A stretch of DNA of 64,000 nucleotides, from the NCBI GenBank assembly GCA_053919585.1, contig CM132804.1; one strand, 5' to 3'. A program made the translations under genes and the position numbers. The notes under the pieces were generated by a model, which had not been told where the DNA came from, ran no database searches, and saw only the letters and a program-made list of their open reading frames with translations. Source of the DNA: Euprymna scolopes. Taxonomy: Eukaryota. Of this stretch, positions 3,545 to 51,190 are shown piece after piece; positions within the stretch are counted from its first letter, which is position 1; every line of letters starts with the position of its first letter.

Positions 3545-3945
3545 TCTTAGGAAATTAATTTTATTTACTGCGGACTATTATCCTCATCTTTTAATTGCTG
3601 TTTTATGTTTTGGCCTACTATTCCTGTGGCTTTCGTCATGTGGTAACCGCAAGGGGATAGGAACTCTGAATGTGCTAACTGCATTCACAGCAGTTTTAAT
3701 CCTTCCCAAAGCCGGTCAGAGGCTTACTTAGCCAAAACGTGGTGAGACAACAACAGCTACAGAAGGTAGTAATTGCTGTGAATGCAGTTAAGAGATTCGG
3801 AGTTCCTATCTGTCGCGGTTACCACCTGACGAAGGCCAGAGGAAAAGTTGGCTGAAACGTTGTGAAACAACAACTAAAAGAAGATGAGAATAATAGTCTG
3901 CAGTAAATAAAATGAATAAATAATCCTCATCTCAATAATGAATTC
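3545..3945 (+). mobile_element. Family A tRNA/hammerhead element: 5'-truncated copy with inverted partner
   Basis: About 3560-3695 is the reverse complement of about 3770-3915. B-box remnant gttttaatcc near 3693. HHR core CTGACGA at 3826, then A-GGCCA..TTGGCT, GAAAC, GTT. Homologous to 18640-19270. Confidence 0.75.
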
Positions 3946-4540
3946 CAATTAAATAATATATATTTGTCTTAGGACTTCTATGGATTGGCTACCCACCAGA
4001 AACTTTATTCTTTGTCTCAGGACGTCTAATGATTTCGTTAGCCATTGGAACCTCTACTCTTCGTCCCAGGACTTCTAAGGATTGGCTATCCACCAAAACC
4101 TCTTCTAAAACAAAAACAAAAAATGGCTTACAGCTCAAAAGATTCGACCAATGTAACCTCTGAGATTTTTCAGGCACATGTGGTTGAAATGGTAATCTGT
4201 AAAAAGATTTGCCCTAAACCCTTCATTTATTTTATTATACAAATAACATCCCAGATGAGAACAGTATGATCAAAATAATACAAACTAGTGGGACCTGTGG
4301 ACATTCCACAATGAACTCTTTCATATGTAATAAATTTATGTTGGCATTCTGTGGATGCTCAGCATAAATGAAGACGCCTTGATATTATTGTAGCTCTTTT
4401 GTTAAAACTACAAAAGTATTTAGCAAAGTTAGCAGAGACGCTAGACGTAGCACGGTTATAAAATAGGCAAAAATATATTTTAATTCATGTAGATTTTGTG
4501 TATATTATTATAGAGTCAATTTTCTATCTATTCTTATGAA

Positions 4541-4621
<81 letters not shown>

Positions 4622-5489
4622 TGAGTTCTTTCAGCTATAATCAAAACCACACTTATTAAGAATTCTTGGTAAAATTATTCATTACAAGAAATGGAGGGTC
4701 ATAACAATTAAACGAAAATCACTCAGAAGAAAAAAGATATAAGCGTGACACACAAAATAACACTCACTATCGTATTAATATATAGAAGATATCCATCTTC
4801 ATTTCAAAAATCTTCCTTTGATGTGATAAGAGTTATCTCCCCCTGATAATTGATAGAGAATATGGTTTATAATCGTAGGTAATCAAGCGTTTCCATCGCA
4901 AATGAGCCACTTGCTTAGGGATAACATTGTTTCTTTCTTTACTTTTGTTCGCCCAAAACAAACATACTGCCACTAAAGTGTGAGGGGCTACTGTGATATG
5001 GGGTTTGATTTATATGGGAAACAAGGTTGGGAGTAAGTATGGCTGAGGAAATAAGGAGCAAGGGTGGGATTTTCAAAGTCAAACAGCCAGAGAAAGGAAG
5101 CAATTCGAGGATAAAAACTTCCGGCTTTTAGGGAGCTCTAGATTGGATGTGTAAGATTTTATTGCTTGTAGCATGGGTCGGGCGTATCTATGTTCAGGGG
5201 GGAGGATACAAGTGAAGTAAGTTTATTGAAGCACATTACGTAGAAACACTTGTGGAACAAGCAAAGGAACGCAGTGTTTTAATCGATATATGATGAATAA
5301 CATGGTTATATAATGTTGATATATTATAATATTAAACTTATGTAGATGTTTTGTGGATTTTTTAAGCGATAATACGTTTAATTAGCGTCTTCACATTGAA
5401 GACATTTTTCTTAGAAAATCGCTCATATTTTGGGACAAAAACAAATATTTATTTATTATTTTTATTTTACTCATAAAACAGTAATTTAC

Positions 5490-5575
5490 AACCATTCATG
5501 TTTCGAGGTCCTACCTCTCTTCCACGTACCTTGACTGTTTCTAGGAATCGAACCTCTGACTATATGTATTACGGT
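5490..5575 (-). mobile_element. Decayed tRNA-B-box + hammerhead-like element
   Basis: The minus strand reads GGTTCGATTCC, about 20 nt, then GTGGAAGA-GAGG TAGGA CCTC-GAAAC-ATG. Stem II and GAAAC are kept, but the core and cleavage site are mutated. Confidence 0.4.
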
Positions 5576-6432
5576 TTTATAAGTAAAATAAAAATAATAA
5601 ATAAATAATATTAAAGATATATAGAAGTTAAAGCATGAAATCTTTTTTTTTCAAAATTACTGTATTCGACATTGAATAACATGAAAACGGTTGATATGCC
5701 ATAAAACCAAACCTTAAAATATATTACATGCCTAATATAATACACAAACACTGTACAACATATCTTTTTCATTTCCCTTTCACCATAGCACATTTGAATA
5801 ACTGGTTGAAGGAAACAATATTTATTTGCAAATTTTTCGAAATGTTAAGTAAAATCTATCTTTTTTCTATATTATATTTCTCTTAGTCTGTCCATTACAC
5901 GTTTATCAGAAGCTACTGAGCCGATAAGATCTTAAGTTTTGTATGGATTTCATCATGATACTGTGCAGCGAACTAAGTATTATAGTATCTGTATCTTTAA
6001 AGATTAATATGGATTATTATTTAAGTTCCACTTTTTCTCGGAAACTACTCGGCCTATCTGGCTAAAAATTTTGTATGAATCTTTGTTATGATTAGATACA
6101 GCAAATTAAGTTGTATAGTATCCGTTCGCGGAACAGTTTGGGATTAACAGAGATTAGTATTCAATACAAAAATGTGTAGAAATTTAACCATAGTCAACCA
6201 TTATTTTGGCATAAAGCATTCATTCTACGTTAACAGTCTATAATTTTCGCCGGGGTTTTTTTTACAAAAAAAAAAAAAAAAATACAAAAATAAAAACGCA
6301 TAATAAGTTAAATATTATTATATCTAGATTAAAATACTTACTATTAATGGAGATTTGGTATCTGTATGTCTGAAATCGAAAGTATACTGTTATATTTACA
6401 TCGAAACAATATTATTACTTCTATACTTGAAA

Positions 6433-8800
6433 TTTTTTTTTTTTTTTACACAGTGATCACTACTTATCAAGGCCCGGAAGCCACTCAGGGATAAGGGTTA
6501 TTGCAAGTACATTATGTTAGTGTGGAGATTGGATGAAGTGTTTAAGGGGGCGGTTAATTAGGAATTTGTTAACGTTGGACTTGCACACATCCAAGTTGTA
6601 GTCGGGTGGGAAGCAGGCAGACGGAACAGAGTTCCACAGGCGTGCAGTTCTAAGAAAGAAGCTTTGTTCATGGAATCCGCGTTTTGATTTAGGCATAGAT
6701 ATAGAGTGGGGGGAATTTTTCACAGTGGATTCAGCTAGACGGGTGTTTTTCGTGAAAGATTGGCGAGGGGTGACCGGAGATTGAAGTTCAGACGAGCACC
6801 TGCCATGAAAATAGCGATAAAACAAGGATAGGCTCGCAACGTCTCTTCTGTGGGAGAGAGGTTGCAGAGTAGAGAAAAGGGCATCCCCCACTAAGCCACG
6901 AAGTCTATTTAGTACTCTGTCAAGGCAGGATAGGCTGTTTTTAGCAGCTCCTGCCCAGATATGGCAACAGTATTCCATACTTGGACGTACTTGGCTTTTA
7001 TATAGATAGAGAATTGCATCAGTAGTGAGATATCTTCTGGAGCGGTAGAAGGATCCCACCATCTTTCCAGCGACCTTGGCAACAGACTTGATGTACGTGT
7101 TCCATTTCAGATCAGGAGTAAAGGTCAAACCCAGAAGCTTGTCAAAACATGGGGCCTCACCCAGACGAGAATCATCCATCACAATTGATGCCAGATGGGG
7201 ATCAGAGCGTTGATGATGTAAGGATAGGAGTTTGGTTTTGGATGCATTAAAGGTAACCAGCCACATCTTCCCCCACTGAACCACGCGCTCGAGATCAGAG
7301 GAGAGAGAATCAGAGAGAACTTTGTCATTTACAGCCTTTGATGTGTTGCCGTAGATGGTCGTGTCATCAGCATAGATGTCAACGAATGATTTAAGTATAT
7401 GTTTAGGGAGGTCATTGATGTAGATCAGGAAGAGAGTTGGGCCTAGGATTGACCCCTAAGGGACTCCAGCATTTATATTGCAGGCCTCGGATTTTTTTCC
7501 ATCTACCACTACTCTTATGAGCCTATCGGAGAGAAATGATTTAATGATTGAGAAAACATTTCCAGTTATACCGTAGCTGGAAATCTTGTGAAGTAGACTC
7601 TTATGCCATACCTTGTCAAAGGCCTTTGATATGTCAAGAGCAATTGCCCTAGAAAGGAAGCCTTTGTCACGAGATTCACTAATTCTGTGGGATATAACCG
7701 TCAGCACATCTGCGGTAGATCTTGCAGAGCGGAAACCATATTGTGTGTCACTAAGAAGGTTATTCCTGCTGAGGTGGTTGACTATTTCTCTATTTAATAT
7801 GGATTCCAGCAACTTACTCATAACACACAGGAGACTTATTGGTCTGTACTGAGAGGGAGATGACTTATCACCTGAATTCTTAAATACAGGGCAAACTGAT
7901 GAGGTCTTCCAGGGAGTCGGAAAGCACTTCTCCTTAAGGCAGCGCTTAAATAGTTTCGTAAGTATGGGAGCAAGTTCTGGTTGAAGCTTTTTTAACACTA
8001 TAATTGGGATGCCATCAGGGCCAGTTGCTTTACTGGAATCTAGGTTCTTGATTAGCTTGGCGACCTCATGCACGGATATGTGTATGTTACCTAGCTTATT
8101 CTGTGTTATAGGAGGAAATATGGGGAGTTGATGGCCTTCGTCGCATAGGGTAGAATTAGCTGCAAAGTTCTTTGCAAATAGTTTGGCCTTGTCTGACGCT
8201 GACGAGATGACCTCTGGTCCATTGATAATGGTTGGGATAGAACGCACACTTCTGTTCAGGATCCTATTTGTTATTTGCCAAAACTGGTGGGAACCAAGCC
8301 GCTGATCAACTACCTTGGATTTAACAGACTGGGCATATAGCTCTCTTGCATTTTTTATTACTCTTTTACAGTGGTTGCTGCCAGTCCTGAAAGCAGTTTT
8401 AGTCTCAGTGCATTTATTACGTTGGTAGCTATGGAAAAAGTGATTTCTGTGCGCGATAGCAGCAGCACATTCTGGGGAGAACCATGGCTGGCTGTTAGGT
8501 TTTTGTTGGAATTTTTTAGATGGTATGAATTGGTCTATGCCTACAATTAACCATTCGGTCAGATCTGATACTATAGAGGACACTTCCTTTTTAAACATGG
8601 AGTGCAGAGGTAAATCAGATATGAATGTACGGAAGCTATCCCAGTCAGCCATAGAGTATCAGTATACAGTACGGTGGAGGGGTACGTCTGGGGACTTCTT
8701 ACATTTCGTTTTTATCTTAACTGATACGACGGAGTGGTCGGAGGATCCTAGAGGAGAATGAACGGAACATGAACATAGCTCAGGGGAAGTTGAGAGAAAA
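6433..8800 (-). mobile_element. 5'-truncated CR1/Jockey-group non-LTR retrotransposon (end of APE endonuclease + RT), ORF2 disrupted
   Basis: One reading frame carries SPLGSSDH (APE end), KATGPDGI, YRPISLL, QYGFR, LDISKAFD, GVP*GSILGP, YADD and LQPLSHRR. It is broken by two in-frame nonsense codons (about 8660 and 7456). The 3' UTR ends in poly(A), seen as the T-run at 6433-6447. Confidence 0.93.
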
Positions 8801-12840: not shown

Positions 12841-12914
12841 CATATCTCTCTTTCTCCCCCTCTCTCTCTATACACATACACACATATATATATATGTGTG
12901 TGTGTGTATGTATA

Positions 12915-13082
12915 TTTATATTATTAAATATTATTTTACGTGCATAAAAGTATACCTATGGACACGCATGTTTCTGGCTTTTAGCCGTCGTCAGCACATG
13001 TTAGGATCGAACTCATGACATCAGTATCCGTATTCTCATACGTTACCAATGAACCAGGATCGATCGCCACTTCAATGCACGG
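12915..13082 (-). mobile_element. Family B tRNA/hammerhead element
   Basis: The minus strand reads B box GAGTTCGATCC, then CTGACGA-C-GGCT AAA AGCC-A-GAAAC-ATGCGT-GTC-CATAGG. Homologous to both arms of 42365-42770. Confidence 0.8.
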
Positions 13083-13269
13083 NNNNNNNNNNNNNNNNNN
13101 NNNNNNNNNNNNNNNNNNNNNNNNNNNNNNNNNNNNNNNNNNNNNNNNNNNNNNNNNNNNNNNNNNNNNNNNNNNNNNNNNNNNNNNNNNNNNNNNNNNN
13201 NNNNNNNNNNNNNNNNNNNNNNAGCTCAATACGCAATAGAGAGTAGAACGTATTATAAGAGAAAGAAAA

Positions 13270-13813
13270 TTAAAATTTCAAGTTGAACTTTACAATCAAA
13301 ATTTATTGTTTGACTGAATACTCCAAAAAACAATTTACAAAGTCCTTATTCCGCGGAGTTTCAAAGAATGCTATTCTTCTCATCAGAAGGCCGAAAGAAA
13401 TCAGCAAACTATATTTGTACCAATGCTAGAATTTGCTGATTCTGGAATTAACTGAATCCAGAATGTATTATAGTCATAAATTGCCAAGAAAAACAAGTGA
13501 AAAAATGTTGAATATGTAAAAAAAATATATATAAATAAACTGCGCATAATATTTCAGCTTGCATGAAGATTCTCTCAAGGCAATCCGAAAGGCGAAAATA
13601 ATTCTTTAGAGAGAATGAAGTCCCACTTAATGCCTTCATCAGCAAATTCTAGTATTGCTACAAATATAAATAGCTGATTTCCTTATGTCTTCTGATGAGA
13701 AGAATAGTAAGAATAGCATTCTTTGAAACTCCGCGGAATAAGAACTTTGTAAATTGTTTTTTTTTTGGAGTATTCAGTCGAATAATAAATGTTGATTGTA
13801 AATTTCAACTTAG
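13270..13813. mobile_element. Head-to-head inverted repeat with a hammerhead-like motif in each arm (family F)
   Basis: About 13278-13440 is the reverse complement of about 13638-13813. The right arm has CTGATGA at 13692, GAAGAAT..ATTCTTT, GAAAC, TCCGCGGA, ATA. Confidence 0.7.
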
Positions 13814-16833: not shown

Positions 16834-16834
16834 T

Positions 16835-16900
16835 CAGTAACCCTTATCCCCGAGTAGCCTCCTGGCCTTGATAAGTGGTGACTTCCATGTAAAAAAAAAA
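16835..16900 (+). mobile_element. 3' tip of CR1/Jockey-group LINE
   Basis: taacccttatccccgagtagcctcctggccttgataagtggtgac followed by poly(A). Matches the 3' UTR of the 6433-8800 element. Confidence 0.75.
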
Positions 16901-18121: not shown

Positions 18122-18489
18122 CAAAGATGTTGATAGTACTGTAGAGTAATTTTTCGATAAGACATTGATACTGGCGGTTTCAGAAGGAATGGGAATTTCA
18201 AACAGTTGAGCTTGGAATACCGTGTCTCGTTCATCAATCAGTAAACCACCGGGATGGATTTCACATTTCGCCGATATGAACATCTAATTGAAAATTCACC
18301 GCATAGTCTTATATATAATAAATATGTTGCTCTCATAAACATAATTTAGTACGTTTTTCTCTTCCAAATGTACGTAGCTATAATATATATTTATTTATCT
18401 TCTCTGCAGAACAAGGTAAGATGGGGAGGGGAGTAACGATTGAATTGTGTGCACACAAGGTAAAGTTCACTATATATACGTATTTATTG

Positions 18490-18635
18490 TAATGATTATT
18501 AAATACCTACAGACACTAGTGTTTCATCCTTTCAGAAATAATCAATGTCACGATTAACACCGGTCGATAGATTCGAACCCGGCAACAGAAGCCATCTCTG
18601 GCATCATTAGTAAGAACCTAATCTATTTGCGAGAA
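18490..18635 (-). mobile_element. Family C tRNA/hammerhead element (decayed core)
   Basis: The minus strand reads B box GGGTTCGAATC, then TTGATTA-TTTCT GAA AGGAT-GAAAC-ACTAGT-GTC-TGTAGG. Homologous to 25058-25159. Confidence 0.65.
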
Positions 18636-18639: not shown

Positions 18640-19270
18640 TTATTTATTGAATTATTGAATTATTTATTCTAGTTGTTGTTCAGATTTTATTGAATTATTT
18701 ATTCTAGTTGTTGTATTTCTTCTAGTTGTTGTTTTCTACGACGTTTCGACCAATTATTCCTCTGGCCTTCGTCAGGTTAACCGCAACAGGATACATCCAC
18801 TTTCAGTAGTTGTTGTTATCTCACCACGGTGTGGTCAACTAATCCTCTGAGCGATTTTGGGTGGGATTGAAACCGTTACCTCCAGACAATACTCACTTGG
18901 AATCTTGGATATTCCTGCATCTCTATCCACTACGCCACGGGCTCCAAAGGGCAATCAAGGTTGGATTTTTTGATCTTATAAATCCACAATCTTCCAATTG
19001 TTGGGTCCGTACCGACTGTCGGTCAGAGGATCAGTTGACCAAACCATGGTGAGATAACAAGAACTACTGAAAGCAGTAATTGCTTTGGATGTAGTTTAAA
19101 GATTCTACATTCCTATCCGGTTGTGGTTTACCTGACGAAGGCCAGAGGAATAATTGGCCGAAACGTCGTAGAAAGCAACAACTAGAAGATGAGGAATAAT
19201 TGGCCAAATAATTAAATTAAAAAAAACAAAAACAAATTTACTCATCCCCAAATAATTCCAAAAACTTAAT
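18640..19270. mobile_element. Family A tRNA/hammerhead element: full copy on the minus strand plus inverted 5'-truncated copy on the plus strand
   Basis: Minus strand: A box TGGCGTAGTGG (18937-18927), B box GGTTTCAATCC (18874-18864), HHR core 18775-18740. The plus-strand arm has an HHR at 19119-19180. Confidence 0.85.
19119..19180 (+). ncRNA. Type I hammerhead ribozyme (minimal, loopless stem III)
   Basis: CUGACGA at 19132, extra A, GGCCA/UGGCC, GAAAC, GUC cleavage triplet. Stem I is UUUAC/GUAGA plus GUUGU/GCAAC. Confidence 0.85.
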
Positions 19271-19420
19271 TCAATATTTATTTTTTAAATGTTTTTTAAC
19301 GTCTGTCAGAGTGTCCTAATCATTATATGATGATCTACGCATAAGAGTTAAATTGACCGACTTTTATTTCAACTGAAAGTGCTCAACGATAAGAAACGAG
19401 CTTCTTGAACGGGCTGACAT

Positions 19421-25002: not shown

Positions 25003-25051
<49 letters not shown>

Positions 25052-25057
25052 ATACTA

Positions 25058-25159
25058 TGATAATTAAATACCTACAAACACTAGTATTTCATCCTTTTGA
25101 GAATCATCAATGCAGGGTGTCACAATTAACACAGGTTGACCGATTCGAACCCAGCAACG
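25058..25159 (-). mobile_element. Family C tRNA/hammerhead element, abutting (AT)n; head lost in N-run
   Basis: The minus strand reads GGGTTCGAATC...CCTGCA-TTGATGA-TTCTCAAAAGGAT-GAAAT-ACTAGT-GTT-TGTAGG. Stem I is CCUGCA/UGUAGG. Confidence 0.65.
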
Positions 25160-26389: not shown

Positions 26390-26735
26390 ATTACTTTTCT
26401 GAAATTCATAGATGGATATTGATAATTCGTATTTTTTGGATTCTTCAAACTAATGTTCTCATCTTGAGTGTTATTTTCACAACGCCTCCAACATTCTTCA
26501 AGTGTATCTTGTCGAACTCAGGAATCTACATAGAGTTTTGAATGAAACCCATTATTTAATCCAGGGGGAGGTAACATGCTTTCATTGTGTCAGCTGTGAT
26601 AGAGTTCTAACTAATTTGCAATAGCGTTTTTGACTATCACCTGCACTGAGGATTGAACCTTCAACCTCCAGAAGAGTGTAATTTCAAATGAATTTTTACA
26701 AAGTACTTTATCCACTGTGCCATTTGAGAATTCCA
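26390..26735 (-). mobile_element. Decayed family E-like tRNA-headed element
   Basis: Minus strand: A box TGGCACAGTGG and B box GGTTCAATCC. Body and tail (gttgtgaaaataacactcaagatgagaac) resemble 45350-45715, but the HHR core is partly deleted. Confidence 0.55.
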
Positions 26736-28507
26736 GGGGCTGTACTCCCCGCTTATCTTGGCATTGTTTCCAGTCGTCTAGCATTTCGCCTTGCCAGTGG
26801 ACTCAAGTAGTGACGATTCAGAAGAGCTGTGGTTGGGATTGTGCAACCCTTGCCTCACAATTACACACATAAGGGGTATCCATTGTATCTTGAGACTGAG
26901 CAAGCAGCATCGAACCTAAACACTTGAAATGGTTTCATCTTGCAGTTTGTTTGTTTTTTTATTCGCTAACTTTTGCTTGAAAGTGGATGTTTATGCAGAT
27001 ACAAATAAAAACAATTTGTTCCTTATTATACAGTGGTAGATGTATACTATAATGCACAAGTCGGTATAAATATTGTTTTAAACAAAAAAATAAATAAAAA
27101 GTGCTGCACTATTCCCTTTTAAACATTAAGAAATACTTTTTAGTTTAAAAAGAGAAAATGAAAAAATAAACTGTCCCATTATTTTTGTCCTTTGCAGTTT
27201 TCCTATTGTTCATTTTTTTTTTTTTTTTGGATCCTCCGACAAAAGGAGGGTGGACCTGTAAAATTTTGTACAAACATTAAACATGATATCAGTAAAAAAA
27301 ATGTAAGAGAACCGATTTTCCAGGAAAACTCCGCCCCCCCCCCCCTCCTACGTGTGCCTTTCCGGTTAAAATGGCTAAAATTGACACTTTTGTGCTTATT
27401 AAAAAAATTGATGCCTTTGGTTTTTATAAAACTTTCTGAAAAGTTATAACTATCTGATCTCTATATAATCTTGTTTGTCTATACTTCGCGATAACTCTTG
27501 GGTGTGCCCTAGGGGCTCTTTTAAAGCTAAAAAAAAACACTCCATTTTTGGGACTATTTTACCATATTTGTCCAAAATTTTCTGTGTATTGTCTATTTAG
27601 CAGTTTTGTGTGGTGCTGAACTCAAATTTAAATTTGTTAAAGCCTTGGGGACTTTCTGGGCTAAATAGGAGGCGGGGCAAATGATGTACTTAGTCATTTC
27701 TTTTTTTGCATGGTGCAGAACTCAAATTTACATATGTTAAGGCCTGAAACTACACCGTTTCTTCATTTTCACCCGGAATTCCCTGGGGACTTTTGGAGCT
27801 AAATGGGGGGGGCAAATGCTGAACTTAGTCATTTTTTTATGCCTTGTTCACTGTGCACTCACGGGGGACCATGCATGCTTCACTTGTTCTTTAATGGAAA
27901 TCCCTTCAGACAAGGTGTTAAGCCACTTGATGTAAGGATCTAACATGAACAACAGATAATTATCACAAAGACAGGAGATGCCTATTGACCTTAGTTTTGA
28001 AATGACCATGGCTATAGATAGGGTGATGACAGTGACCAGGAAGAGAGTTTCACAAGTTTGCAGTTCTTAGAATAGGAAGCTAACAATCGAGGTATCAAAA
28101 CAGTGAATTGATGAACACCACTAGATCAATGAGTCAAACGAGCTGGGACAAAAGAAATAGGTAATAGATGAGAATTCTGAAGAACACATGTCATGATATT
28201 GTTTATTAAAAAAAAAGACTAGCAATATCATGGCTGTTTAGAGAGGTTACAGAGTGTGATCAATCAAATTATACGTTATCAAGAACCTTCAAATGGCACA
28301 AAGATTCAATAACCTCCATTCAGTCTTAGAAACAATGGATACCCTCTGTAAGGGTTCCTGTGCATATAACTATCAAGCAAGATTTGTTCAATCCCCAACC
28401 ATGCCTCTCCTGAATCGACCCTGCCTTATTCCATTGGCAAGGAGGTTCAAGATGACTGAAAATAATGCCGAGATAAGTGGAGAGCACATACAGCACCTGG
28501 TACCATA

Positions 28508-28628
28508 TGCTACAGTACGACATAATCATGTGGACACACCAATTCCGTTAGATCATTGAAGTTAAGCAATGTTGAGCTTGTTCAGCACGAAAGTGGGTGA
28601 CCATTTGGGAATACTAGGTTCTGTATGT
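28508..28628 (+). pseudogene. 5S rRNA-derived pseudogene / possible SINE3 head
   Basis: Collinear with metazoan 5S rRNA: gatcattgaagttaagcaa (box A region), tgggtgaccatttgggaatactaggttctgta (box C and 3' end). Many substitutions. Confidence 0.8.
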
Positions 28629-30463
28629 GCTCTCTGCTTATCTCAGACAGAGATTAACCAGCCCAAATATAACAACAGTACCTCACACAGGGTCTGATAG
28701 TAGATTTGCTGAGGTAGAGAATAGCATTAGATTTGAAAATGTATTTAGAGCAATAGAAAGAATCGATTTTATGAGGAACCCTCCCCCCCCCCCAAAAAAA
28801 AACAATGAATCGAATATATGAATTTCAAGAAAGATTTGATGACAAAGAAAGCCGAAGAAGATTAGGAGTCGATTTGCAATCAGAAGAGGAGCCAACTATA
28901 AGAATTTCTGTAATACATCGGTTTAAATTCTTTTTTCAAAATCTCATCTGAAAGCACCTAATACTTTCCAGGAAATCCATTATTCACCCATTCACAAGAG
29001 ATATTTCATGTCAGAATTAAATAACCTAAAAATGAAAACGGGAACAAGAAGCACTTTTTTTTACTAAGGAATCACCTCTTATTAAGGTCAAAAGTCTCTC
29101 AAGGATAAGGGCTAATGAAATGGATAGCTTGTCAATTCAGCAAAACTATGGAACGGTTGAAAACCATTATGGTATGATAGTACCTATTTACTATGCCTCC
29201 CCACGGGACAGAGTTAGACACCAGGGTCGTTTTTTAACGTGGAGAAAAGGTACAAAAATAAAAATTGTCTCAGTCGTGAAGGATTTCTCCTCCACTGAAA
29301 GAGAACAAGAAATGGAAGTGCAGCATCAGAAGAACAGATGGTATTTATTTGCTCCCCCACTGAGCAAATTAGGCACAAGGCCGTTTTTAATGTGAGGTAA
29401 AAACCAGCTCCCCTAAAAGTAGGCAAAAAGGGGGCACTCTGGTTACCAAAAATAATAATTGTCCCAGTATAGAGGGTTTCCCCTCCATTGACTGGTACAA
29501 ATTATCTTAAGTGCAGCATCTGAAGAATAGATACTACACTTTGATCTTGACCAAAAGGCCAACTCTCATTATCAGGGAGTGTCTCGTTGCTGATTCAGTT
29601 GCATGAAGACTTGGGTTGATAATATCAGTCAAGGATTCTTTCTTGCCAATCAGTCCGACAGAAATTGTGCCATTTTGGTTACCTCTTAGCTGTCAAGCTG
29701 TAGTATTCCATCCTAGGTAGTATCTTTGCCACCCAGCTTTCAGCTAAAGTAAATTTCTTGCTTACTGCCTACGGCACAATGACCAGGGATTGCCGACGGG
29801 TTGCCAAGACAAATTTTAGTTGCTAAAATGCTCCTACAAGGATGCTGGCTTGATTCTCTCTGCTTTACATCTTCCTGTGGTGGGTAAGGAAGTAAATACC
29901 TACCCATCTTGTGAATATGGACTCTTTCAGACACTATGGTGTCGAGGAGATCAAAATGAAGTCTCGAGGTAATTTGGAAGCATTTTTTTTTTGTGTGTGT
30001 AACAACATATTTTGTACTTATGTAACTAAATGTTATCTTATTTATGAACGACCTTTCAATGTTACAACAAAAATGATGAACTGGATTTACAAAATTTGAA
30101 TTCTTATTCATCATTTTTGTCCATCCACTTTTTTTTTTTTTTTTTTCTTATCCACACATAAGAAGTTCTTGAAGAAAAACTCTGTTTATGGAAATTCCGT
30201 TTGATACTAATCATACAAAATGAAGGAAAGAAAGTTCTTGGCAGCTGTGGTAGAAAATAAGTTCTTGTTGAACATCTTCCATAGAAATAATGATAGAGTA
30301 GAGAAAAAAACTAGTGTCGACTCTTCTGTGAGAAAGGGGTTGTAGAAAATAGAAGAGCCCATCTCTTACTAGATTGCGAAGTTGGTTTTGTACTACATCG
30401 AGAATGAAGCATTTACAATAATTATCATGCTTGCATATTAAATAACCCAAAACATTATCATCA

Positions 30464-31238: not shown

Positions 31239-32556
31239 ATCTGCTGAAAGTAGAGTTCCATCATACAACTTCTGCATCTGAGACGTTGTGTAAGCAGAAC
31301 TCTGTGCAATTGATACAAAGAAATTGACATTTTTACCAATTTTCTTTTAAAAATGATAAAAAGTAAAATATTTATTCGCATTGCCTTTTTCTTTCAGCTT
31401 TTCGAAATCATTTCATAGAAAAACACACAATGCGAAAATGGTAAAGCATTGAATTTTAACTTAATTAAAAGAAGCCATGTGTGTTTCGAAGCAAGTAAAA
31501 GAATACGAGAGCACTCAGCAACTAATGCTATTGGCACTAAAAATTTAAACAATCAAGTCGTAGTCGGTCTATTGGCATTATCATCCGTATTTTATTCGCG
31601 TATTAGTCGAGCATCTTTATCTGAACGGCGCATAAATGGCGATTTTTGAAGTCTTAAAATGATTTTTGAAAAAAAGTTTGAAAAAATATTTTCTTTTATT
31701 ATAATGGCAAAACAAAATTGTAAGAATAATTTAATGAAATTAAAAGAACATAAAACATGAAATAAAACTAAATTATTTTTTTCTTTTTAAATTACTTTTA
31801 TAGAAATTTGTTTTGGTGAGTCAGTTTAATAGAAAATCAACTGTTTTGTTTTTTAAAATATTTCATATCGACCATAATACTTATTGTTAATGATTCATTA
31901 TATATGCAACTATAAATTGCAATGTTCACCCATTGACGAAGAAGCATTATCGGTTTATACATTTTTTATAGCATTATTATCTAAATCTATATTCTAGTAG
32001 GCGAAAACAATTTCATATTCCTACGTACGTCATTGCAATACACCCTTTTTTCAAAAGATGAGATCGCTCGATCGTTGAAAATGCAATGCAAGAAAAAATA
32101 ATCTTCTAAACTTCATCTGATGCTTCTGTTGTGTCAGACGTGAAACTCAAAGTAAAATACATATTCTTAACCTCCTGGTGAGGATCAAAGTGTAGTTCGC
32201 CAATGAAATAATAATAACACGACTTTTTATAAAATTTTATTTTCTACAGGCAATACATATATATATTTTATTTAAAAAAAAAAAAAACACGATTTGATTG
32301 GGAAATCTTATGTAGAACGACCCTGGGTGTGTTTGTAAATGAGAGATTTAGCTAGGATAAGTGTAAATCAATCAAAGATACAGTGACGAGACATAGACCC
32401 TCCCTCCCAAATTTTTTGATCAGCCTTGTGCTTAATATTTTGTTTCGTTAATTTTCTTTGGCAGAAAAAAAAATATATATATATCAAAGTGTGGTATCTG
32501 TTCTATCAAAGGATGGTACAATAATATTGTTGAGTATGCGTTCATGCCAGAGGTTC

Positions 32557-32616: not shown

Positions 32617-32706
32617 TTTAAAATTTCGAATCTCGCTAGATACAGCCACTCTGATGAGTCGTAGACGATGAAACACGTGTCAGTGGATGATTACATTTTA
32701 AAAATA
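32613..32706 (+). mobile_element. Family D ~95-nt tRNA-T-arm + hammerhead element inside (AT)n
   Basis: TTCGAATCTC B-box remnant at about 32625, followed by a complete HHR. Flanked on both sides by (AT)n. Confidence 0.75.
32646..32686 (+). ncRNA. Type I hammerhead ribozyme, canonical core
   Basis: CCACU-CUGAUGA-GUCG UAGA CGAU-GAAAC-ACGU-GUC-AGUGG. Stem I is perfectly paired, stem II has 4 bp, stem III is the palindrome ACACGUGU. Confidence 0.9.
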
Positions 32707-32871
32707 ATATATATATATATACCGGTCCCCATGTGGGGGTACCAAATTGGTTAAAAGGGAAAATTATTCCCAACTCGCATTTAGGTAAAAATGCACTTTC
32801 GTAAATAATTGAATTCATTCAAAACATATCGCTAAAACCAAAACAAAACAATATACATATATATATATAAA

Positions 32872-33157
32872 TCCACTGTGAAAAATTTCCCCCACTCTAT
32901 ATCTGTGCCTAAATCAAAACGCGGATTCCATGAACAAAGCTTCGTTCTTAGAACTGCACGCCTGTGGAACTCTGTTCCGTCTGCCTGCTTCCCTCCGGAC
33001 TACAACTTGGATGTCTTCAAGTCCAATGTTAACAAATTCCTAATGAACCGCCCCCTTAAGTAAACACTTCAGCAAATCTCCTCACTAACTTAATGTACTT
33101 GCAATAACCCTTATCCCTGAGTGGCTTCCGGGTCTTGATAAGTGGTGATCACTGTGT

Positions 33158-33160
<3 letters not shown>
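32872..33160 (+). mobile_element. CR1/Jockey-group LINE 3' fragment
   Basis: Near-identical to the 3' end of 6433-8800 (ORF 32878-33063). Inserted among (AT)n. Confidence 0.9.
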
Positions 33161-33224
<64 letters not shown>

Positions 33225-42320: not shown

Positions 42321-42364
42321 ATATATATGAATGAATCGCCCTTATTTTTTATCGAACGTATTTA

Positions 42365-42764
42365 TTCATTTATTTATTTACTATTAAATATGTACGTGCA
42401 TAAAAGTATACCTATGGACGACTTTTAGCCGTCTTCAGCATAGGTTAGGATCGAATTCATGACACTAGTATCCACAGTCTGACACTGATTAGATGTGCCA
42501 CGCTAGATCACCACTTGAACGCACGATTTTTTATCTTAAATATAAGATTTGTTGTTGGCGTTTCGAAGTTTCAACAACAAATCTTATATTTAAAAGCGAT
42601 AAAACATTGTGCATTCAACTGATGATCTAGCGTGGCACATCTGTTCAGTATCAGACTGCGGATACTGGTGTAAGGAGTTCGTTCCTAACCTATGCTGAAG
42701 ACGGCTAAAAGCCAGAAACATGCATGTCCATAAGTTCACTTTTATGCATGTAAATATTTAATAA

Positions 42765-42770
<6 letters not shown>
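42365..42770. mobile_element. Family B tRNA(Arg-like)/hammerhead element as head-to-head palindrome
   Basis: The arms meet at a 14-nt spacer (42558-42571). Right arm: tRNA-like 42628-42694 then HHR. The left-arm HHR has lost GAAAC and stem III. Confidence 0.85.
42687..42736 (+). ncRNA. Type I hammerhead ribozyme
   Basis: AACCUAUG-CUGAAGA-C GGCU AAA AGCC A-GAAAC-AUGCAU-GUC-CAUAAGUU. Stem III is the palindrome ACAUGCAUGU. Confidence 0.85.
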
Positions 42771-42796
<26 letters not shown>

Positions 42797-43228: not shown

Positions 43229-44807
43229 TTTGGCCAATTTCTCCACTCTCTCGTGCAAAGTTAGCCCACCAGATAAAATAAATGGACAAAAACAAAACAA
43301 AAAAATAATATGCAGAGTTTAGCACCGATATTCAACAAGACCTGTATAAATATATATAGTTATCATTTCGAAATCCATTTTTTAGGCAAACGCCTAGATT
43401 TTCACTTCACTATGTGTGTATACACACACATACATATAGTAGTGATGGGGTGATTTTAATATGTTTTTTATTCAATACAGTTATTGATTCCGGATCTTTT
43501 ATATTTTTTAATATTTTTTTTTTACAATTTTATTTTTCAGATTACCATGAAAAATTGTAATATGTGCACAAAATCTCAAATGTAAGAATGCATTTGTAGG
43601 AGTGATCGATATATCTTGATTTTACTAGTAGTTTGAAGTTAATAAATAGTTATATTATCATTGTGGTTTCCTCAACTTTCGTTCTGGAATCACCTCTGAC
43701 TCTATGATGTGACTTGAACTTTTACATTCAACCAACAACTTTCGCGATGTAACCCACATTCTATTTAAGCAATGAACGTCAGAGAAATATATGCAAAAAG
43801 AAGTGAAATGCAAATAAAAAGAAAAATTTATTTTAAAGAATAATATATGAAAAAAAAAAATTGCTGAATAGCCAAAACGTATTAGAAGCTGCAAGAGGAT
43901 TTTCATATATAAATGTAAAATAAGTGTTGCATGCAAATTATGTAAACAGAAAATATTTGTTTTATTTCCTTCCATCTTAGCTGTCAACATGAAACGGTGG
44001 ACAATTGATTTATTATCCACAGTTTCGTATTCTGGTCACGGACTTTAGCAACTAATATCATTTCAATATCAACACTTCCATGAACCCGTTTCCCAATTAA
44101 TACAGTTTCGTTAATTTGGCTGGGAGCAAAACGTAGTATCTAGTGTGATACTACACTTTATCATCTTTCTCGTCGGTCCGTGAAGGAGGAATCCGTCTAA
44201 ACTGAGCCCTTTTAAAATTATGTCCCAATCCAGACTTCACTCTTTTTGACAAAAGGGAGAACTTAGATTTTCTCCACATTAAAAACTGACCTTCATGGGC
44301 ATACAAGTAAATAGGAACACCTTTAAAATTTTAACAGGTATTTATTCAAGAACACTAAAACTCATAAGCTGGAAATAATTAAATTAATTGATAGATAACC
44401 CGACAACCTAAAGCAGATTTCTTCTTAACCTTTTGGCTAGGGGCAAAGTGTAATAACTGTTCTGACATTACACCTCAGTGTTATATTCTTAAATCTCTAA
44501 TATTTGAAAAAAAAAATATATCTTGATCTTAGTTGTTATAAGCAGTATTCTTAAACCTATGTAGCCTAAAACATTTAGATTCATTTAATTTCTATGTTTT
44601 TTTTTTTTCAAATTGTATTCATTTAGTACGATATGATTCAAAGTGAGAAGCGTCAAAGTACCTCACAAATAAAGGGAAGTCAAGCCTTTGTTTGAAAGCA
44701 GATTGACCATTGGTTAATATACAATAGTTCGAGAGATAGTGACAATGCCAACAGTTTATTAATTAATAAGAATAAACACTACTTATGCATAAAACAATAC
44801 ATGCACT

Positions 44808-44852: not shown

Positions 44853-44964
44853 TTTTATTCTACTAAGCTCTACTCATGTATTGAGAACTGATGAAGTAAA
44901 TGATTAAAATTTATATACATAATATATTATATCACCTAATAACATTATATGTGTACAGACATAA

Positions 44965-45004
<40 letters not shown>

Positions 45005-45006
<2 letters not shown>

Positions 45007-45746
45007 GAGAGGGGTTCCAAAAGTAATGCCTCCTATTTTTCCTATCTGAATGCATCAGAGGGGATTGAAAATTGTAGTGTTATGATGACTGAACTTATGC
45101 ATTCATGCCCTGAGAGTTTCTTCTATCTAGCTCTCTCTGTTGCAGATATTGGCCATGCAAGATTCTAAGAAAGCAACTCCTGTCATGAATTTGCGTCAGA
45201 AGCAGAGATGCATCATTGAATTCTTGGCAAAAGTACATTGAGAATGGTGGGAACTATATAGGAGAAACAATTCTGGGACACAAAAGGTTGCTCGTTTTAA
45301 TGCTACCACTCCCATCTTCGTAGCTCTTCAACTTTTTGAGTTAAAAGAATAGTCCTAGTGACATATGGCCGAGTGGTCCTAGACGTTGTATCAAAGTTTA
45401 CAGTTACCCAAAGGTGCTGAGTGCAATCCTGAACGAAGGCAGTGAAAAAGTAACATTCAAAAACAGAGAATCAGCAACTATGTCCTAAAGCCTAGCTGGA
45501 GTCCGAACACGGTACCCCCGTAATAATAATAAAGGGTTGGGTTCGAGACTCCTAACAAACGGTTCCCCAGTTCGATACAAAACTCCTGACGAAGGCCGGA
45601 GGGCAAAACGGCCGAAACGTTGTGACAATAACAACCAAGATGAGGAAGTCAGTCCGACAATCTCAATCAATGAAAACACCTCATCTCAAAAATACAGACA
45701 ATTACTAAAAGAATAGGACTTTATACTTTTTGGAACGACCCTTGTA
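45005..45746 (+). mobile_element. Internally deleted mariner carrying a nested tRNA/hammerhead element
   Basis: TIR-like ends cgagaggggttccaaaagta / tactttttggaacgacccttgTA, and transposase N-terminus MNLRQKQRCIIEFLAK at 45185. Confidence 0.65.
45350..45715 (+). mobile_element. Family E tRNA(Leu/Ser-like)/hammerhead element
   Basis: A box TGGCCGAGTGG (45366-45376) and degenerate B box GAGTGCAATCC (about 45419). HHR: CTGACGA at 45586, A, GGCCG/CGGCC, GAAAC, GTT. Tail similar to family A. Confidence 0.8.
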
Positions 45747-47021: not shown

Positions 47022-47063
<42 letters not shown>

Positions 47064-47660: not shown

Positions 47661-47701
47661 TCCCTTGAAATTTTTTACCCAACAATAATTATGAAATATA
47701 T

Positions 47702-47980
47702 TAGTGATGAGATGGTTCCAATATATTTCCCGATTCTGATACAATTACCGATTCTGTACTAAATTCTAGATTCTGATTCCAATTCGTTATAAATCTCTAA
47801 ATATTTAACTATAAAGTTATTTTTCCCCCGATTACCGTAAAACATGTTAAATATGCAGATATTTTTTCAAACATAAATGTGTGTGTGTGCGGGAGGGGGG
47901 TGATCTTTAGATTTTAGTTTTAGAAAAGTCCTGATTTTTTTGATTCCCCATTCCAATTCCAATTAATCGTCCCAACACTA
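47702..47980. mobile_element. hAT-like MITE with (ATTCCG)-type subterminal repeats
   Basis: TIRs TAGTGATGAGATGGTT / AATCGTCCCAACACTA. Related ends occur near 17043, 43440 and 62517. Confidence 0.55.
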
Positions 47981-49186
47981 ATGTATATATATGTATATAT
48001 ACTAATAAATCAAGACTTAACCAGCCTGAAAGCTATACTATAAAATATGTTAAAGAGATGACTTGATTTCCAGCTAAATGATGATGAACGTTATGCAAGA
48101 TCGAAAATAACTGATGGAATTGATGACTTATGAAGACGCTTTAAAACAAGTGTTTGTTGGCATTATACTTAAAAATGACCATAGTGCTTATTGTGATAAC
48201 GTGTTCTACTGATGTTAAGTTTTTGGAAAGAAACTTAGTTCATGGAAAGTGTGTTTCGTGTAAGGCAAACGGAGGAAGAAAGGAACATTCTATGCAATTA
48301 TGGCAGTAAGATGAGTTCTTGCTGCGAATATCTTATAAGCAGAAACTTGGAGCTCAGTCGAGCACTTTCCATGAGACCAATTTCTAACTCTAGTCTGCAC
48401 TGTTTTCAATGTCAAACATATAAGTTGTTTTACTGATTTTGAATATTATGCTAATTTTATTGAATAAGATATTGAATTGTGACCGATGTGATTCTGTTGT
48501 TGGTACTGATTTCCACAAGTTTTCTTTTTAAAGAATCAGGTACTTATCTGAAAGACAATGAAAAGTGTCCCAACATCCAGCATGGTGATGGTGGTGTGGA
48601 ACCGAAAAGATTTTAATTTGGAATGCCCAGGTTTCAGTCCACAACGTTATCGTCACAATAATAATCCTAGTTTCTATACCAGATTTACTGTTTATATCCC
48701 CTTCAGCAACAGGTTCGATGCTATCTGGATGTCCTTATGTTAGGTAATCCCGAAGTTATGGCATTGATTTTCGAAACACTTTGTATGTTGTTAATTTCTA
48801 CTTTCTTCAATTTATTTTGGAATTCAATTCCGATAATTCTTGTTTTGGTTTCATGTATTAGACGTCAATTTATAAGTATTCTTAAATTTCTGTGGAGTAT
48901 TTTTGAAAGTGTTTTAGTGAACATAATAGAGGAACAATCTTCCATTTGGAAATTTAAATATTCCTGAGTTTTTGGAAACTGGACAGGTAGTGATGAGACA
49001 TTAATTAAGCAAGATTATCTGAATTTCAATTTCTTCTTCAGAGTGTAGGAATATTCAAAAGCACCATAACTTTTTAAAAATATTATTGTTTTGGCACGTG
49101 TTTTCGAGAAACGTGACCACACTTCATGTATATTTATAAGGAAAGCAAAATTGATTGTAATCATTATTTTTTATATTTTTATTTTC

Positions 49187-49693
49187 GGGTTTGTATTACT
49201 GTACACATAGATTCGAAAAAGTTGTCAAGAAACAAATATATAACAAATAAATGTTATCAAAGGCAAAGGATGTATTCGAAAATTCCAGATGGCGTATCAC
49301 ACCCTCTTTAACACCGTAAGTATGGAAAAAGGTATTATAAATAAAAAACTATACAAAATACTATTAAAAACCCGCCGAATATATGTCAACCTATGTCAGG
49401 GTAACATATATTGAGCGAGTTTTTAACAGTATTTTATCGGTTTTTTATTTATAACATCTTTTCCCACACTTACCGTGTTAAAGAGAGAATAAGACGCCAT
49501 CTTGAATGTTCCAATACATCGATAAACACTGTATGTTTTTCGAGCTGAATAAACATGTTACATTGAATAAAAACACGAAAAATATATCCAGTTTGGTAGA
49601 AAAGTAACTTATCTTGCCTTTGATAACATTTATTTGTTATATATTTGTTTTTTGACAACTTTTTCGAATCTATGTGTACAGTAATATAAACCC
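49187..49693. mobile_element. Foldback MITE (MULE/Merlin-like) with 8-bp TSD
   Basis: Nearly the whole element is palindromic about 49395. Termini are GGGTTT/AAACCC, with TTATTTTC at 49179-49186 and 49694-49701. Confidence 0.8.
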
Positions 49694-49709
49694 TTATTTT
49701 CTTTTGGTT

Positions 49710-51190
49710 TTGGAATCCTTGAGATGAGGATTCATAATTTGTGCATTCATCCTTTTTCTGGACTGTTATCCTCATCTTTATTGTTGTTGTTTCACCATGT
49801 TTCGAGGCGTTGAGTGTTTACGGCTCCAGCTGAGCCTAGTCTGAAGATAGCAGTTTCAATCCTACCCAAACAAGTTAGAGGATTAGTTGGCCAAAGCGTG
49901 GTGAAACAACAAGTATGGAATGCAGTAATTACTGGGCATAAGCTACAAGACTTTTTTTCTTTTTTTTTTTACACGGTGGTCACCACTTATCAAGGCCCGG
50001 AAGCCACTCGGGGATAAGGGTTATTGCAACTACAGTACGTTAGTGTGGAGATTTAATGAAGTGTTTACTTAAGAGGGTCGTTCATTAGGAATTTGTTAAC
50101 GTTGGACTTGAAGACATCCAAGTTGTAATCAGGTGGGAAGCAGGCAGACGGAACAGAGTTCCACAGGCGTGCAGTTCTAAGAAAGAAGCTTTGTTCATGG
50201 AATCCGCGTTTTGATTTAGGCACAGATAAAGAGTGGGAGAAATTTTTCACAGTGGATTCAGCTAGATGGGTGTTTTTGGTGAAAGAGTTGAGAGGGGGGA
50301 CCAGAGATTGGAGTTCAGACTAGCACCTGCCATGGAAATAACGATAAAACAAGGATAGACTCGCAACGTCTCTTCTTGAAGGAGAGAGGTTGCAGGGTAG
50401 AGAAAAAGGCATCCCTCACTAAGCCACGAAGTCTATTTTGTACTCTGTCAAGGCAGCATAGGCTGTTTTTAGCAGCTCCTGCCCAGATATGGCAGAAGTA
50501 TTCCATCCTTGGACGCACTTGGCTTTTATATAGATAGAGAATTGCATCAGTAGTGAGATATTTTCTGGAGCAGTAAAAGGATCCCACCATTTTTCCAGCG
50601 ACCTTGGCAACAGACTTGATGTACATATTCCATTTCAGATCAGTAGTAAAGGTCAAACCCAGAAGCTTGTCAAAACATGGGGCTTTTCCTAGACGAGAGC
50701 CATCCATTTCAATTGATGCCAGATGGGCATCAGAGCGTTGACGGTGTAAAGATAGGAGTTTGGTTTTAGATGCATTAAAGGTAACCAGCCACGTCTTCCC
50801 CCACTGAACCACGCGCTCGAGATCAGAGGAGAGAGAATCAGAGCGAACTTTGTCATTTACAGCCTGTGATGTGTTGCCATAGATGGTCGTGTCATCAGCA
50901 TAGATGTCAACGAATGATTTAAGTATGTGTTTAGGAAGATCATTGATGTAGATCAGGAAGAGAGTTGGGCCCAGGATTGACCCTTGAGAGACTCCAGCAT
51001 TAATACTGCAGGCCTCTGAATTTTGTCCATCGACCACTACTCTTATGAGCCTATCGGAGAGAAATGATTTAATTCTTATCCCGTCGCGGTTAATCACGTG
51101 AAGAAGGCCAGAGGATGAGTTCGACGAAATGTGATGAAACAGCAACAACTATGACAATGAGGATAACAGTTCGCAAAAAGAATGAATGGT
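49710..51190 (+). mobile_element. Decayed family A tRNA/hammerhead element split by a LINE insertion
   Basis: 49840-49950 carries the B box (gtttcaatcc) and first unit. The element resumes at 51072 (ttcttatcccgtcgcggtt..gtgaagaaggccagagg..cgaaatgtg). An inverted tail copy lies at 49710-49805. Confidence 0.65.
49952..51071 (-). mobile_element. 5'-truncated CR1/Jockey-group LINE
   Basis: RT motifs QGSILGP and YADD, and the same C-terminus and 3' UTR/poly(A) as 6433-8800. Frameshift near 50380. Confidence 0.92.

Follow-up and report, generated by a model that had tools for sequence, protein, structure and literature searches.

Do Penelope-like elements (PLEs) have short interspersed nuclear elements (SINEs) of their own? 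The question is raised by a 64,000-nucleotide stretch of contig CM132804.1 from Euprymna scolopes (GenBank assembly GCA_053919585.1), here called the window, in which several families of short repeats place a tRNA-like segment just upstream of a type-I hammerhead ribozyme (HHR) and an AT-rich tail. The initial annotation, made from the letters of the window, read these repeats as SINE-like parasites of PLE reverse transcriptases (RTs) that had arisen repeatedly by fusion of different tRNAs to PLE 3′ ends. How PLEs choose and copy RNA is still little understood, as is the part that their hammerheads play. If different heads have been joined to like hammerhead-and-tail modules, their comparison shows what the PLE machinery needs, with natural minimal templates of about 350 nt.

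Our analysis indicates that the repeats are probably short, non-coding, non-autonomous retroelements in which a tRNA-like segment is combined with a Penelope-type hammerhead and a tail, and which are mobilised in trans by a PLE protein. We set out the structure of the families, their hammerheads and their insertion signatures, then a candidate helper and the evidence on transcription, and finally weigh this explanation against its rivals.

Five families with a common layout

The window is AT-rich (~33% G+C), contains many (TA)n runs and belongs to a mollusc assembly of 5.9 Gb. Genome-wide, first-look candidates, which give lower bounds on abundance, number 5,857 for family A, 790 for B, 1,777 for C, 1,450 for D and 590 for E. 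Scored matches are ~76–84% identical to the window copy in A (full-length matches), ~80–85% in B, 85–88% in C, 96–99% in D and 95–98% in E; because of these high values, D and E are taken to have been active recently. Family alignments were built from 5–28 copies each, drawn from fetched loci, and in every aligned copy of A–E the A/B-box module and the hammerhead lie within one conserved unit. The two are therefore conserved together, which excludes chance nesting, and the existence of at least five families that link such a module to a hammerhead, as first proposed from the window, is borne out by hundreds to thousands of candidates for each.

The units are short (~300–420 nt) and non-coding; the hammerhead lies ~10–110 nt 3′ of the tRNA-like module and is followed by an AT-rich tail of 35–100 nt. 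Family A consists of a leader of ~75 nt, the tRNA-like module (TGGCGTAGTGG ... GGTTTCAATCC), a body, the hammerhead and the tail. Families B and C have a leader, the module, a hammerhead 10–40 nt past the B box and an AT-rich tail that ends in (TA)n. The module of D is followed after 9 nt by a canonical minimal hammerhead, then TTTT, an internal (TA)n, a 3′ region of ~165 nt and a terminal (TA)n. Family E is of the classical SINE type, 356 nt long, with the A box TGGCCGAGTGG ~15 nt from a sharp 5′ end, a fixed 3′ end (…CAATTACTA) and short, variable target-site duplications (TSDs). The tRNA-like head was at first placed at the 5′ end of all these elements, which is true of E alone; a conserved leader precedes it in A–D.

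By BLAST, the five heads are mutually unrelated. Families A and E have one hammerhead-and-tail module in common (80% identity over 66 nt), so there are four hammerhead types and not five; the distinctness of the five families thus holds for their heads and is reduced for their hammerheads. A piece of the tail is weakly common to B and C.

Hammerhead motifs

Matches to the core pattern CTGANGA-N6-30-GAAA number 17 in the window, where 4.7 are expected. A strict descriptor that combines the core with GAAA, H17, a palindromic helix III and helices I and II of at least 3 bp each identifies five complete minimal type-I hammerheads (at 3826, 19132, 32651 and 42695 on the plus strand and at 12994 on the minus strand), whereas 200 simulated windows give an expectation of 0.005. 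The core C3-U4-G5-A6-N7-G8-A9 ... G12-A13-A14-A15.1 ... U16.1-H17 is complete in five window copies and in the consensus of each of the families A–E.

The consensus motif of A is GTTTAC-CUGACGA-A-GGCC(12)GGCC-GAA-ACGU-C-GUAGA, and that of E follows the same design with helix II GGCCG/CGGCC and helix I CAC/GUG. The other three are CCUAUG-CUGACGA-C-GGC(UAAAA)GCU-A-GAA-ACAUGCAUGU-C-CAUAGG in B, CCUGCA-CUGAUGA-U-UCC(UGAAA)GGA-U-GAA-ACACUAGUGU-C-UGUAGG in C and CCACU-CUGAUGA-GUCGU(AG)ACGAU-GAA-ACACGUGU-C-AGUGG in D. For family C, the core had been given as CTGAAAG; the hammerhead has been lost from the two copies in the window, and the correct core, CTGATGA, emerges only from the genome-wide consensus.

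Minimal HHRs of PLEs are marked by an extra nucleotide that lies after position 9 and before 10.1, a G10.1–C11.1 pair and a palindromic 15.2–16.2/loop 3 segment (PMC4209133). Families A and E carry these hallmarks (GA-A-GGCC..GGCC-GAAACGU), as does PLE-1, the autonomous element described below. The extra nucleotide is also present in B and C, together with palindromes of 10 nt, and D has a palindrome of 8 nt and no clear bulge; the 10.1–11.1 pair is non-canonical in all three.

Compensating changes are found in both groups of motifs. In helix I they relate A, E and PLE-1 (TAC/GTA, CAC/GTG and CTC/GAG). When B, C and D are aligned in register, 86.5% of cells are paired, compared with 69% in shuffles (none of 500 reaches the observed value) and 21–44% in slid controls, and 9 of the 15 helix pairs have changed on both sides. 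A covariance model across all families was dropped, as MAFFT misaligned the 3′ halves of A/E with those of B/D.

Unconstrained minimum-free-energy dimers of B and of D are double hammerheads. The A, E and PLE-1 motifs give no hammerhead fold in unconstrained co-folding in silico, in keeping with the low activity that such minimal HHRs are reported to have in vitro. Dimerisation energies are indistinguishable from those of shuffles, and in these predictions topology alone is informative. For B, C and D it is plausible that the RNAs cleave themselves as dimers, held together by the palindromic helix III.

The Rfam hammerhead model (Hammerhead_1, RF00163) reports D alone, at 32644–32688, with 23.4 bits over the complete model (E = 8e-4 in a 151-nt search); this is under the gathering threshold of 34 bits, and A, B, C and E are unmatched even at E-value thresholds. 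At gathering thresholds, Rfam finds no hammerhead and no tRNA in the window, where its sole match is a 5S-like sequence.

Insertion signatures

PLE integration leaves a recognizable set of scars: partial tandems known as pseudo-LTRs, a 5′-truncated copy in inverse orientation at the 5′ end, a short but optional tail, and insertion into microsatellite or AT-rich targets (PMC8557442). Each of these has a counterpart in the short families. Where hammerhead cores of one family lie on opposite strands less than 800 nt apart in the fetched loci, 23 pairs are head-to-head and none is tail-to-tail, a distribution with a probability of ~1e-7 under random nesting. Of 40 full-length copies of E, 15 are accompanied by a short stretch of E in inverted orientation, and all 15 pieces abut the 5′ end (the junction is visible in loci L094 and L096). 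Head-to-head pairs make up all three A loci of the window and its B locus at 42.3–42.8 kb; 5′-truncated and often inverted copies had been noticed there at the outset. Twin priming by a long interspersed nuclear element (LINE) leaves the 3′ module unduplicated and so does not explain such pairs.

Direct pairs are spaced by one unit (356–406 nt in A, 321–378 nt in B and 304–358 nt in D), and copies of D, A and B can begin inside the preceding unit. Classified by copy arrangement, 54 of 90 loci are solo and 16 hold short direct repeats.

The 3′ ends past the cut site are bimodal, at +48–61 or +90–102 nt in A and at +37–49 or +96 nt in B. These alternative ends lie ~45–50 nt apart, compared with 30–40 nt for the published PLE extension. 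The PLE PAc of Anolis has two internal RT start sites 3′ of its HHR (PMC11167929), and the dual 3′ ends of A and B fit this arrangement.

Copies of B, C, D and PLE-1 end in (TA)n, and those of B, C and D often stand between two (TA)n runs, in agreement with the early observation that copies abut (AT)n. Family E inserts at A-rich sites with short TSDs. The window copy is flanked by an 8-bp duplication, AAAGAATA, at 45344–45351 and 45708–45715, which corrects the statement that TSDs are absent.

A candidate helper element

A genome search for the GIY-YIG domain (PF01541) returned 15,395 candidates, many of them within intact open reading frames (ORFs) of 804–870 aa. The C-terminal endonuclease (EN) peptide of one such element, PLE-1, gave 22,049 candidates, the best 150 of which are 99–100% identical; PLE-1 is therefore very young, and it is also extraordinarily abundant, with many intact ORFs of ~805 aa. 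Read from the search table, adjacent opposite-strand copies of PLE-1 occur in the order (-,+) about 30 times for every one in the order (+,-), the same asymmetry of orientation as in the short families.

All five PLE-1 3′ flanks that we inspected (L097–L101) have the same order: the stop codon, ~480 nt, a hammerhead-like motif, ~60 nt and (TA)n. The motif, CCCUC-UUGAAGA-A-GCCCG(7)CGGGC-GAA-ACGU-U-GAG, is of the A/E design, with compensating changes in helices I and II. The 3′ untranslated region (UTR) of PLE-1 also contains two long poly(A) runs. We consider PLE-1 the likely helper of the short families.

One other candidate for a PLE 3′ end, a 1.1-kb repeat beside the A copy at 51 kb, was rejected, as it proved to be a fragment of a LINE RT on the minus strand that adjoins the A copy and is unrelated to it.

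tRNA-like modules and transcription

Motifs that resemble A and B boxes are present in all five families in the right order and with the right spacing, and some are perfect or near-perfect (GGGTTCGAATC in C, TGGCGTAGTGG in A and TGGCCGAGTGG in E). With thresholds relaxed to 80%, ARAGORN calls the heads of A, B, D and E, whereas 2 of 400 shuffles pass (0.5%). In family A no part is better conserved than the head, whose column identity is 0.95–0.97; per column, the head and hammerhead of A and B are barely better kept than the rest of the unit, a comparison that is not decisive. Enrichment of B boxes within the window is weak, sites with at most two mismatches occurring at 0.6 per kb per strand. 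Transcription by RNA polymerase III (Pol III) is suggested by the box motifs, by their order and spacing, and by the 5′ terminus of E.

RNA-seq of polyA libraries, which are ill-suited to Pol III transcripts or cleaved RNAs, covers family E on both strands, mostly as read-through from other copies, and gives zero coverage of family B. Loose read ends in these data confirm the boundaries of E at 45345/6 and 45705–7. Two independent opposite-strand joints in RNA reads and contigs, 45355<->45621 and 45489<->45620, touch position 45620 or 45621 and are represented by few reads; some inverted E copies may break exactly at the predicted hammerhead cut position.

A proposed mode of mobilisation

We propose that the hammerhead and the tail downstream of it mimic the RNA segment that is bound by PLE RT/EN and that serves as the site of internal RT start, as in PAc. 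The PLE protein would then copy the RNAs of the short families in trans into AT-rich DNA. The tRNA-like module probably supplies Pol III transcription, most clearly in E with its exact 5′ terminus. Inserts of A–D reach beyond the head on its 5′ side and may be longer than one unit, and therefore come from templates longer than a simple Pol III unit; such templates might be read-through, tandem or circular RNAs, in the manner suggested for Sm-alpha of Schistosoma and for retrozymes. Self-cleavage is probably unnecessary for insertion.

A more far-reaching version gives PLEs SINEs in the full sense: tRNA-derived heads of the Pol III type, assembled independently of one another, would have been fused to the HHR-containing RT-binding module of PLEs to form a guild, recently active in D and E, in which the hammerhead would act mainly as a recognition handle for the RT/EN dimer and not as a processing ribozyme. 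We put this forward tentatively and give it somewhat less than even weight.

Several observations count against mobilisation of Pol III-transcribed units by PLEs. The motif of PLE-1 has a U at position C3 (CTTGAAGA), and its UTR shows no BLAST similarity to the short families beyond the ~45-nt hammerhead design that it shares with A and E, and nothing with B, C or D. No PLE with a hammerhead of the B, C or D type was found, searches for further PLE families having yielded PLE-1 alone. The helix I of A and E is just 3–5 bp, which makes their hammerheads weak. Rfam tRNA models match neither the heads of E and D searched alone (121–151 nt) nor any locus scanned, among them those that hold A and B, ARAGORN at default settings reports no tRNA in the window or in 29 loci, and the C head fails the relaxed ARAGORN search, which 5% of C shuffles pass. 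The heads of A–D stand inside the unit, and Pol III initiation there cannot by itself yield the inserted RNA; in B and D, moreover, a TTTT lies 12–17 nt past the predicted cut site. Nor do read ends in the polyA RNA-seq accumulate at the predicted E cut site, 45621/45622. Likewise, no RNA-seq ends are reported at the cut site of PAc, whose HHR is active with PLE protein and in which cleavage was dispensable for insertion (PMC11167929).

The first interpretation of the window therefore stands in part. PLE-type scars, hammerhead hallmarks and a young PLE-1 favour SINE-like parasitism of PLE RTs; with no Rfam tRNA match and ~45 nt of likeness to PLE-1, derivation of the heads from tRNAs and fusion to PLE 3′ ends are not established, and the expected alignment of the HHR and tail with the 3′ end of an autonomous PLE did not extend further in PLE-1.

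Alternative explanations

The alternative that survives best holds that the families are ordinary metazoan non-LTR retrozymes: tandem transcripts, made by RNA polymerase II or by read-through, would be cut by the hammerheads, circularised by RtcB and copied by rolling-circle reverse transcription, and the tRNA-like segment would be incidental or would assist processing or ligase recruitment. Units of 300–420 nt are close to the published retrozyme RNAs of 170–400 nt, direct pairs lie one unit apart, and the templates of D, A and B exceeded one unit. Like those of amphibian retrozymes (PMC7229834), the hammerheads belong to type I and are dimer-dependent, and the internal head of A–D and the TTTT right after the hammerhead of B and D also suit such a pathway. 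However, the loci are mainly solo or two-copy and do not form arrays, and E has its sharp 5′ end shortly before the A box and no tandems. That the 3′ ends lie 35–100 nt past the cleavage site means that this site was still uncut in the RNA that was inserted, and no back-joined reads of E are found at the predicted cleavage site in the polyA RNA-seq. We consider this alternative unlikely, and it overlaps with mobilisation in trans by a PLE in that it needs the PLE machinery too.

A second alternative, which we regard as improbable, is that the families are what is left of PLEs after internal deletion, in the form of solo or hairpin pseudo-LTRs whose resemblance to A and B boxes arose by chance in AT-rich DNA and carries no promoter function. 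That no head has a match to a tRNA covariance model, and that the B-box statistics of the window are weak, would be expected of such remnants. Against this, five unrelated heads all have box-like motifs in the correct order and spacing, relaxed ARAGORN calls all four of the heads A, B, D and E at a rate far above that of shuffles, conservation within A is highest in the head, and the UTR of PLE-1 is dissimilar.

Some LINE clades terminate in short tandem repeats, and LINEs are abundant in the window, with RT ORFs at 6517–8652 (-) and 50315–51148 (-) and a 66-nt 3′ end that is common to other short repeats; nevertheless, mobilisation of these families as tRNA-SINEs by RTE- or CR1-type partners, with microsatellite tails and an incidental hammerhead-like sequence, is very improbable, as the hammerhead families have no similarity to the 3′ end of the window LINE, lack poly(A), carry PLE-specific hammerhead hallmarks and form head-to-head duplicates that each have the 3′ module, with dual 3′ ends, which are not products of target-primed reverse transcription by a LINE.

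Copies in the window

Family A is represented by three head-to-head pairs. The first consists of a 5′-truncated copy at 3553–3695 (-) (consensus positions 211–359), located by BLAST of the family consensus, and a second 5′-truncated copy at 3689–3948 (+) (positions 129–391), in which BLAST and the descriptor place a complete minimal hammerhead at 3826–3861 with predicted cleavage after 3861. The copy at 18685–19005 (-) is near full-length by BLAST and alignment and retains the leader, the A box TGGCGTAGTGG, the B box GGTTTCAATCC, the body, the hammerhead core at 18775–18744 and the tail. It is paired head-to-head with a 5′-truncated copy at 19018–19276 (+), which has a minimal hammerhead at 19132–19167, predicted cleavage at 19167/19168 and a 3′ end of the long form (BLAST and descriptor). 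BLAST resolves the third pair into a tail fragment at 49759–49792 (-) as the left arm, and a right arm consisting of a 5′ piece at 49825–49934 (+) (positions 105–218) and a 3′ piece with the hammerhead module at 51072–51170 (+) (positions 242–335), split by the later insertion of a LINE at 49956–51073 (-).

In family B, BLAST and the descriptor identify a copy at 12913–13081 (-) with a complete hammerhead at 12994–12961, the 5′ part of which is cut by an assembly gap at 13083. The second locus is a hairpin of two 5′-truncated copies: the left arm, at 42328–42563 (-), has a decayed hammerhead (BLAST), and the right arm, at 42572–42783 (+), keeps the tRNA-like module, a hammerhead at 42695–42728 with the palindrome ACATGCATGT, and a terminal (TA)n (BLAST and descriptor). 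The spacer of the two arms, 42526–42608, is a near-perfect palindrome (…AATATAAGATTTGTTGTTGGCGTTTCGAAGTTTCAACAACAAATCTTATATT…) derived from the B leader of both.

Comparison with the consensus shows how the two C copies decayed. That at 18465–18625 (-) has the perfect B box GGGTTCGAATC and lost its hammerhead through a 7-nt deletion that removed the 5′ strand of helix I and C3; that at 25037–25158 (-) has a mutated core, TTGATGA, and an assembly gap on its 5′ side. The D copy, detected by Rfam, the descriptor and BLAST at 32623–32709 (+), is 5′-truncated and begins within the B box. Its hammerhead (32651–32681, predicted cleavage 32681/32682) has a helix I of CCACT/AGTGG and the palindrome ACACGTGT in helix III, and TTTT and then (TA)n follow in the tail. 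The 3′ region of the element lies after the internal (TA)n at 32722–32854 (+) and ends in the terminal (TA)n (BLAST and alignment). The E copy at 45352–45707 (+) is full-length and 99.2% identical to the consensus by BLAST and alignment, with the A box TGGCCGAGTGG and a minimal hammerhead of the A/E type at 45586–45621 whose helix I is weakened.

Two further sites in the initial annotation, one at 26.5 kb assigned to E and one at 5.5 kb, have no BLAST match to any family consensus and look by eye like degenerate relatives. The former, at 26440–26690 (-), shows on reading of the sequence a B-box-like motif and a decayed hammerhead and tail of the A/E type. An inverted pair at 13280–13454 and 13624–13811, 83% identical, contains a hammerhead-like core (CTGATGAG) with a 7-bp helix II, GAAAC and the palindrome TCCGCGGA; its helices I and III are imperfect, it is without a B box and it adjoins a gap. 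From these motifs, the pair may be a sixth, decayed hammerhead family. Runs of N in the assembly adjoin this pair, the B copy at 12913–13081 and the C copy at 25037–25158, and our conclusions are independent of continuity across these gaps.

Other repeats in the window

LINE fragments with RT ORFs (YADD motif; frames of 398 and 277 aa) lie at 6433–8652 (-) and 49956–51148 (-). The terminal ~66 nt of these fragments recurs at 16835–16900, 29055–29118, 33102–33161, 56354–56417 and 60478–60536, which suggests the presence of LINE-dependent short elements distinct from the hammerhead families.

The 5S rRNA-like sequence at 28512–28625 (+) scores 47.5 bits, above the Rfam gathering threshold, with many broken pairs in helix I, and probably represents a pseudogene or a SINE head derived from 5S. 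Its neighbour, 28320–28500, is an inverted repeat of 26733–26899. Fragments resembling U2 small nuclear RNA (snRNA) occur in the window at 32470–32556 (+), 32159–32240 (+), 44417–44569 (+) and 29378–29566 (-) with 21–31 bits, and a further one, in genome locus L086 at 946–1158 (-), scores 54 bits. The U2-like piece at 32.47–32.56 kb sits between two (TA)n runs immediately 5′ of the D copy, and U2-derived copies may have been mobilised into (TA)n by the machinery of the hammerhead families. Finally, an 86-nt near-perfect palindrome at 58435–58520 matches mir-548-type models on both strands at ~36 bits, far under the gathering threshold, and resembles a hairpin of the miniature inverted-repeat transposable element type.

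Comparison with known systems

The tRNA-SINEs of cephalopods, or Ceph-SINEs (Akasaki 2010; PMC5786205), resemble the present families in having tRNA-related heads and in the modular evolution of head, body and tail. They differ in that the Ceph-domain consists of CORE and a fragment of an RTE 5′ UTR and that these SINEs are linked to a LINE (RTE), with no hammerhead or PLE link reported (PMC5786205); on this basis we rejected the Ceph-domain as the identity of the hammerhead module. More widely, the cephalopod and mollusc repeat literature that we examined contains no link between SINEs and hammerheads or between SINEs and PLEs. In large mollusc genomes, dependence on PLEs may extend to many ‘unclassified SINEs’ and dispersed hammerheads, and such genomes would then be annotated differently.

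The minimal HHRs of PLE pseudo-LTRs (PMC4209133; Lunse et al. 2017) and the template module of PAc (PMC11167929) have the same palindromic 15.2–16.2/loop 3 segment, AT-rich targets, 3′ ends tens of nucleotides past the cut site, an optional extension and no RNA-seq ends at the cut. Whereas in PLEs the module stands beside an RT–EN ORF, here it is found in non-coding units of ~300–420 nt behind a tRNA-like segment, and the optional extension is ~45–50 nt instead of 30–40 nt.

Metazoan non-LTR retrozymes (PMC7229834; bioRxiv 10.64898/2026.07.22.740005) are likewise non-autonomous HHR units, with RNAs of 170–400 nt, dimeric type-I HHRs, partial tandems and presumed mobilisation by PLEs; it has been said that they ‘could be regarded as’ SINEs, dependent on PLEs (PMC7761336; also bioRxiv 10.64898/2026.07.22.740005). 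No tRNA-like or Pol III module is reported for them in these three sources (PMC7229834, PMC7761336 and bioRxiv 10.64898/2026.07.22.740005). The squid arrays, in contrast, are short and mostly solo or two-copy, E behaves like a classical SINE in its TSDs and fixed ends, and the families are known from genomic copies.

Alongside the retrozymes, the nearest precedent is provided by Sm-alpha and Sj-alpha of Schistosoma (Ferbeyre 1998; Laha 2000; via PMC6765202), which are SINE-like elements with a Pol III promoter and an HHR. They are short non-coding repeats with a Pol III-type promoter just 5′ of a type-I hammerhead, occur in tandem copies, and have the promoter at the 3′ end of the unit after cleavage, the order found in B, C and D. 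The likeness is one of architecture, and there are differences: the host here is a mollusc and not a flatworm, at least five unrelated heads and four hammerhead types are involved, the hammerheads are mostly of the minimal or dimeric PLE type and not the efficient canonical ribozyme of Schistosoma, and the scars of PLE integration are explicit.

The claim of novelty made for the window is thus narrowed, as the combination of a Pol III promoter with an HHR and PLE-dependent, SINE-like retrozymes are already published, and a multi-family class is absent from the literature searched. Judged from sequence comparison, what appears to be new is that tRNA-like/HHR elements form a guild of several families, some of them young, in a mollusc, and that the genomic signs of PLE-type integration are unusually clear. 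The layout of a Pol III promoter plus a hammerhead would extend from flatworms to molluscs and, if the proposed guild is real, it would be the first multi-family system of PLE-dependent SINEs, with tens of thousands of copies in one mollusc genome.

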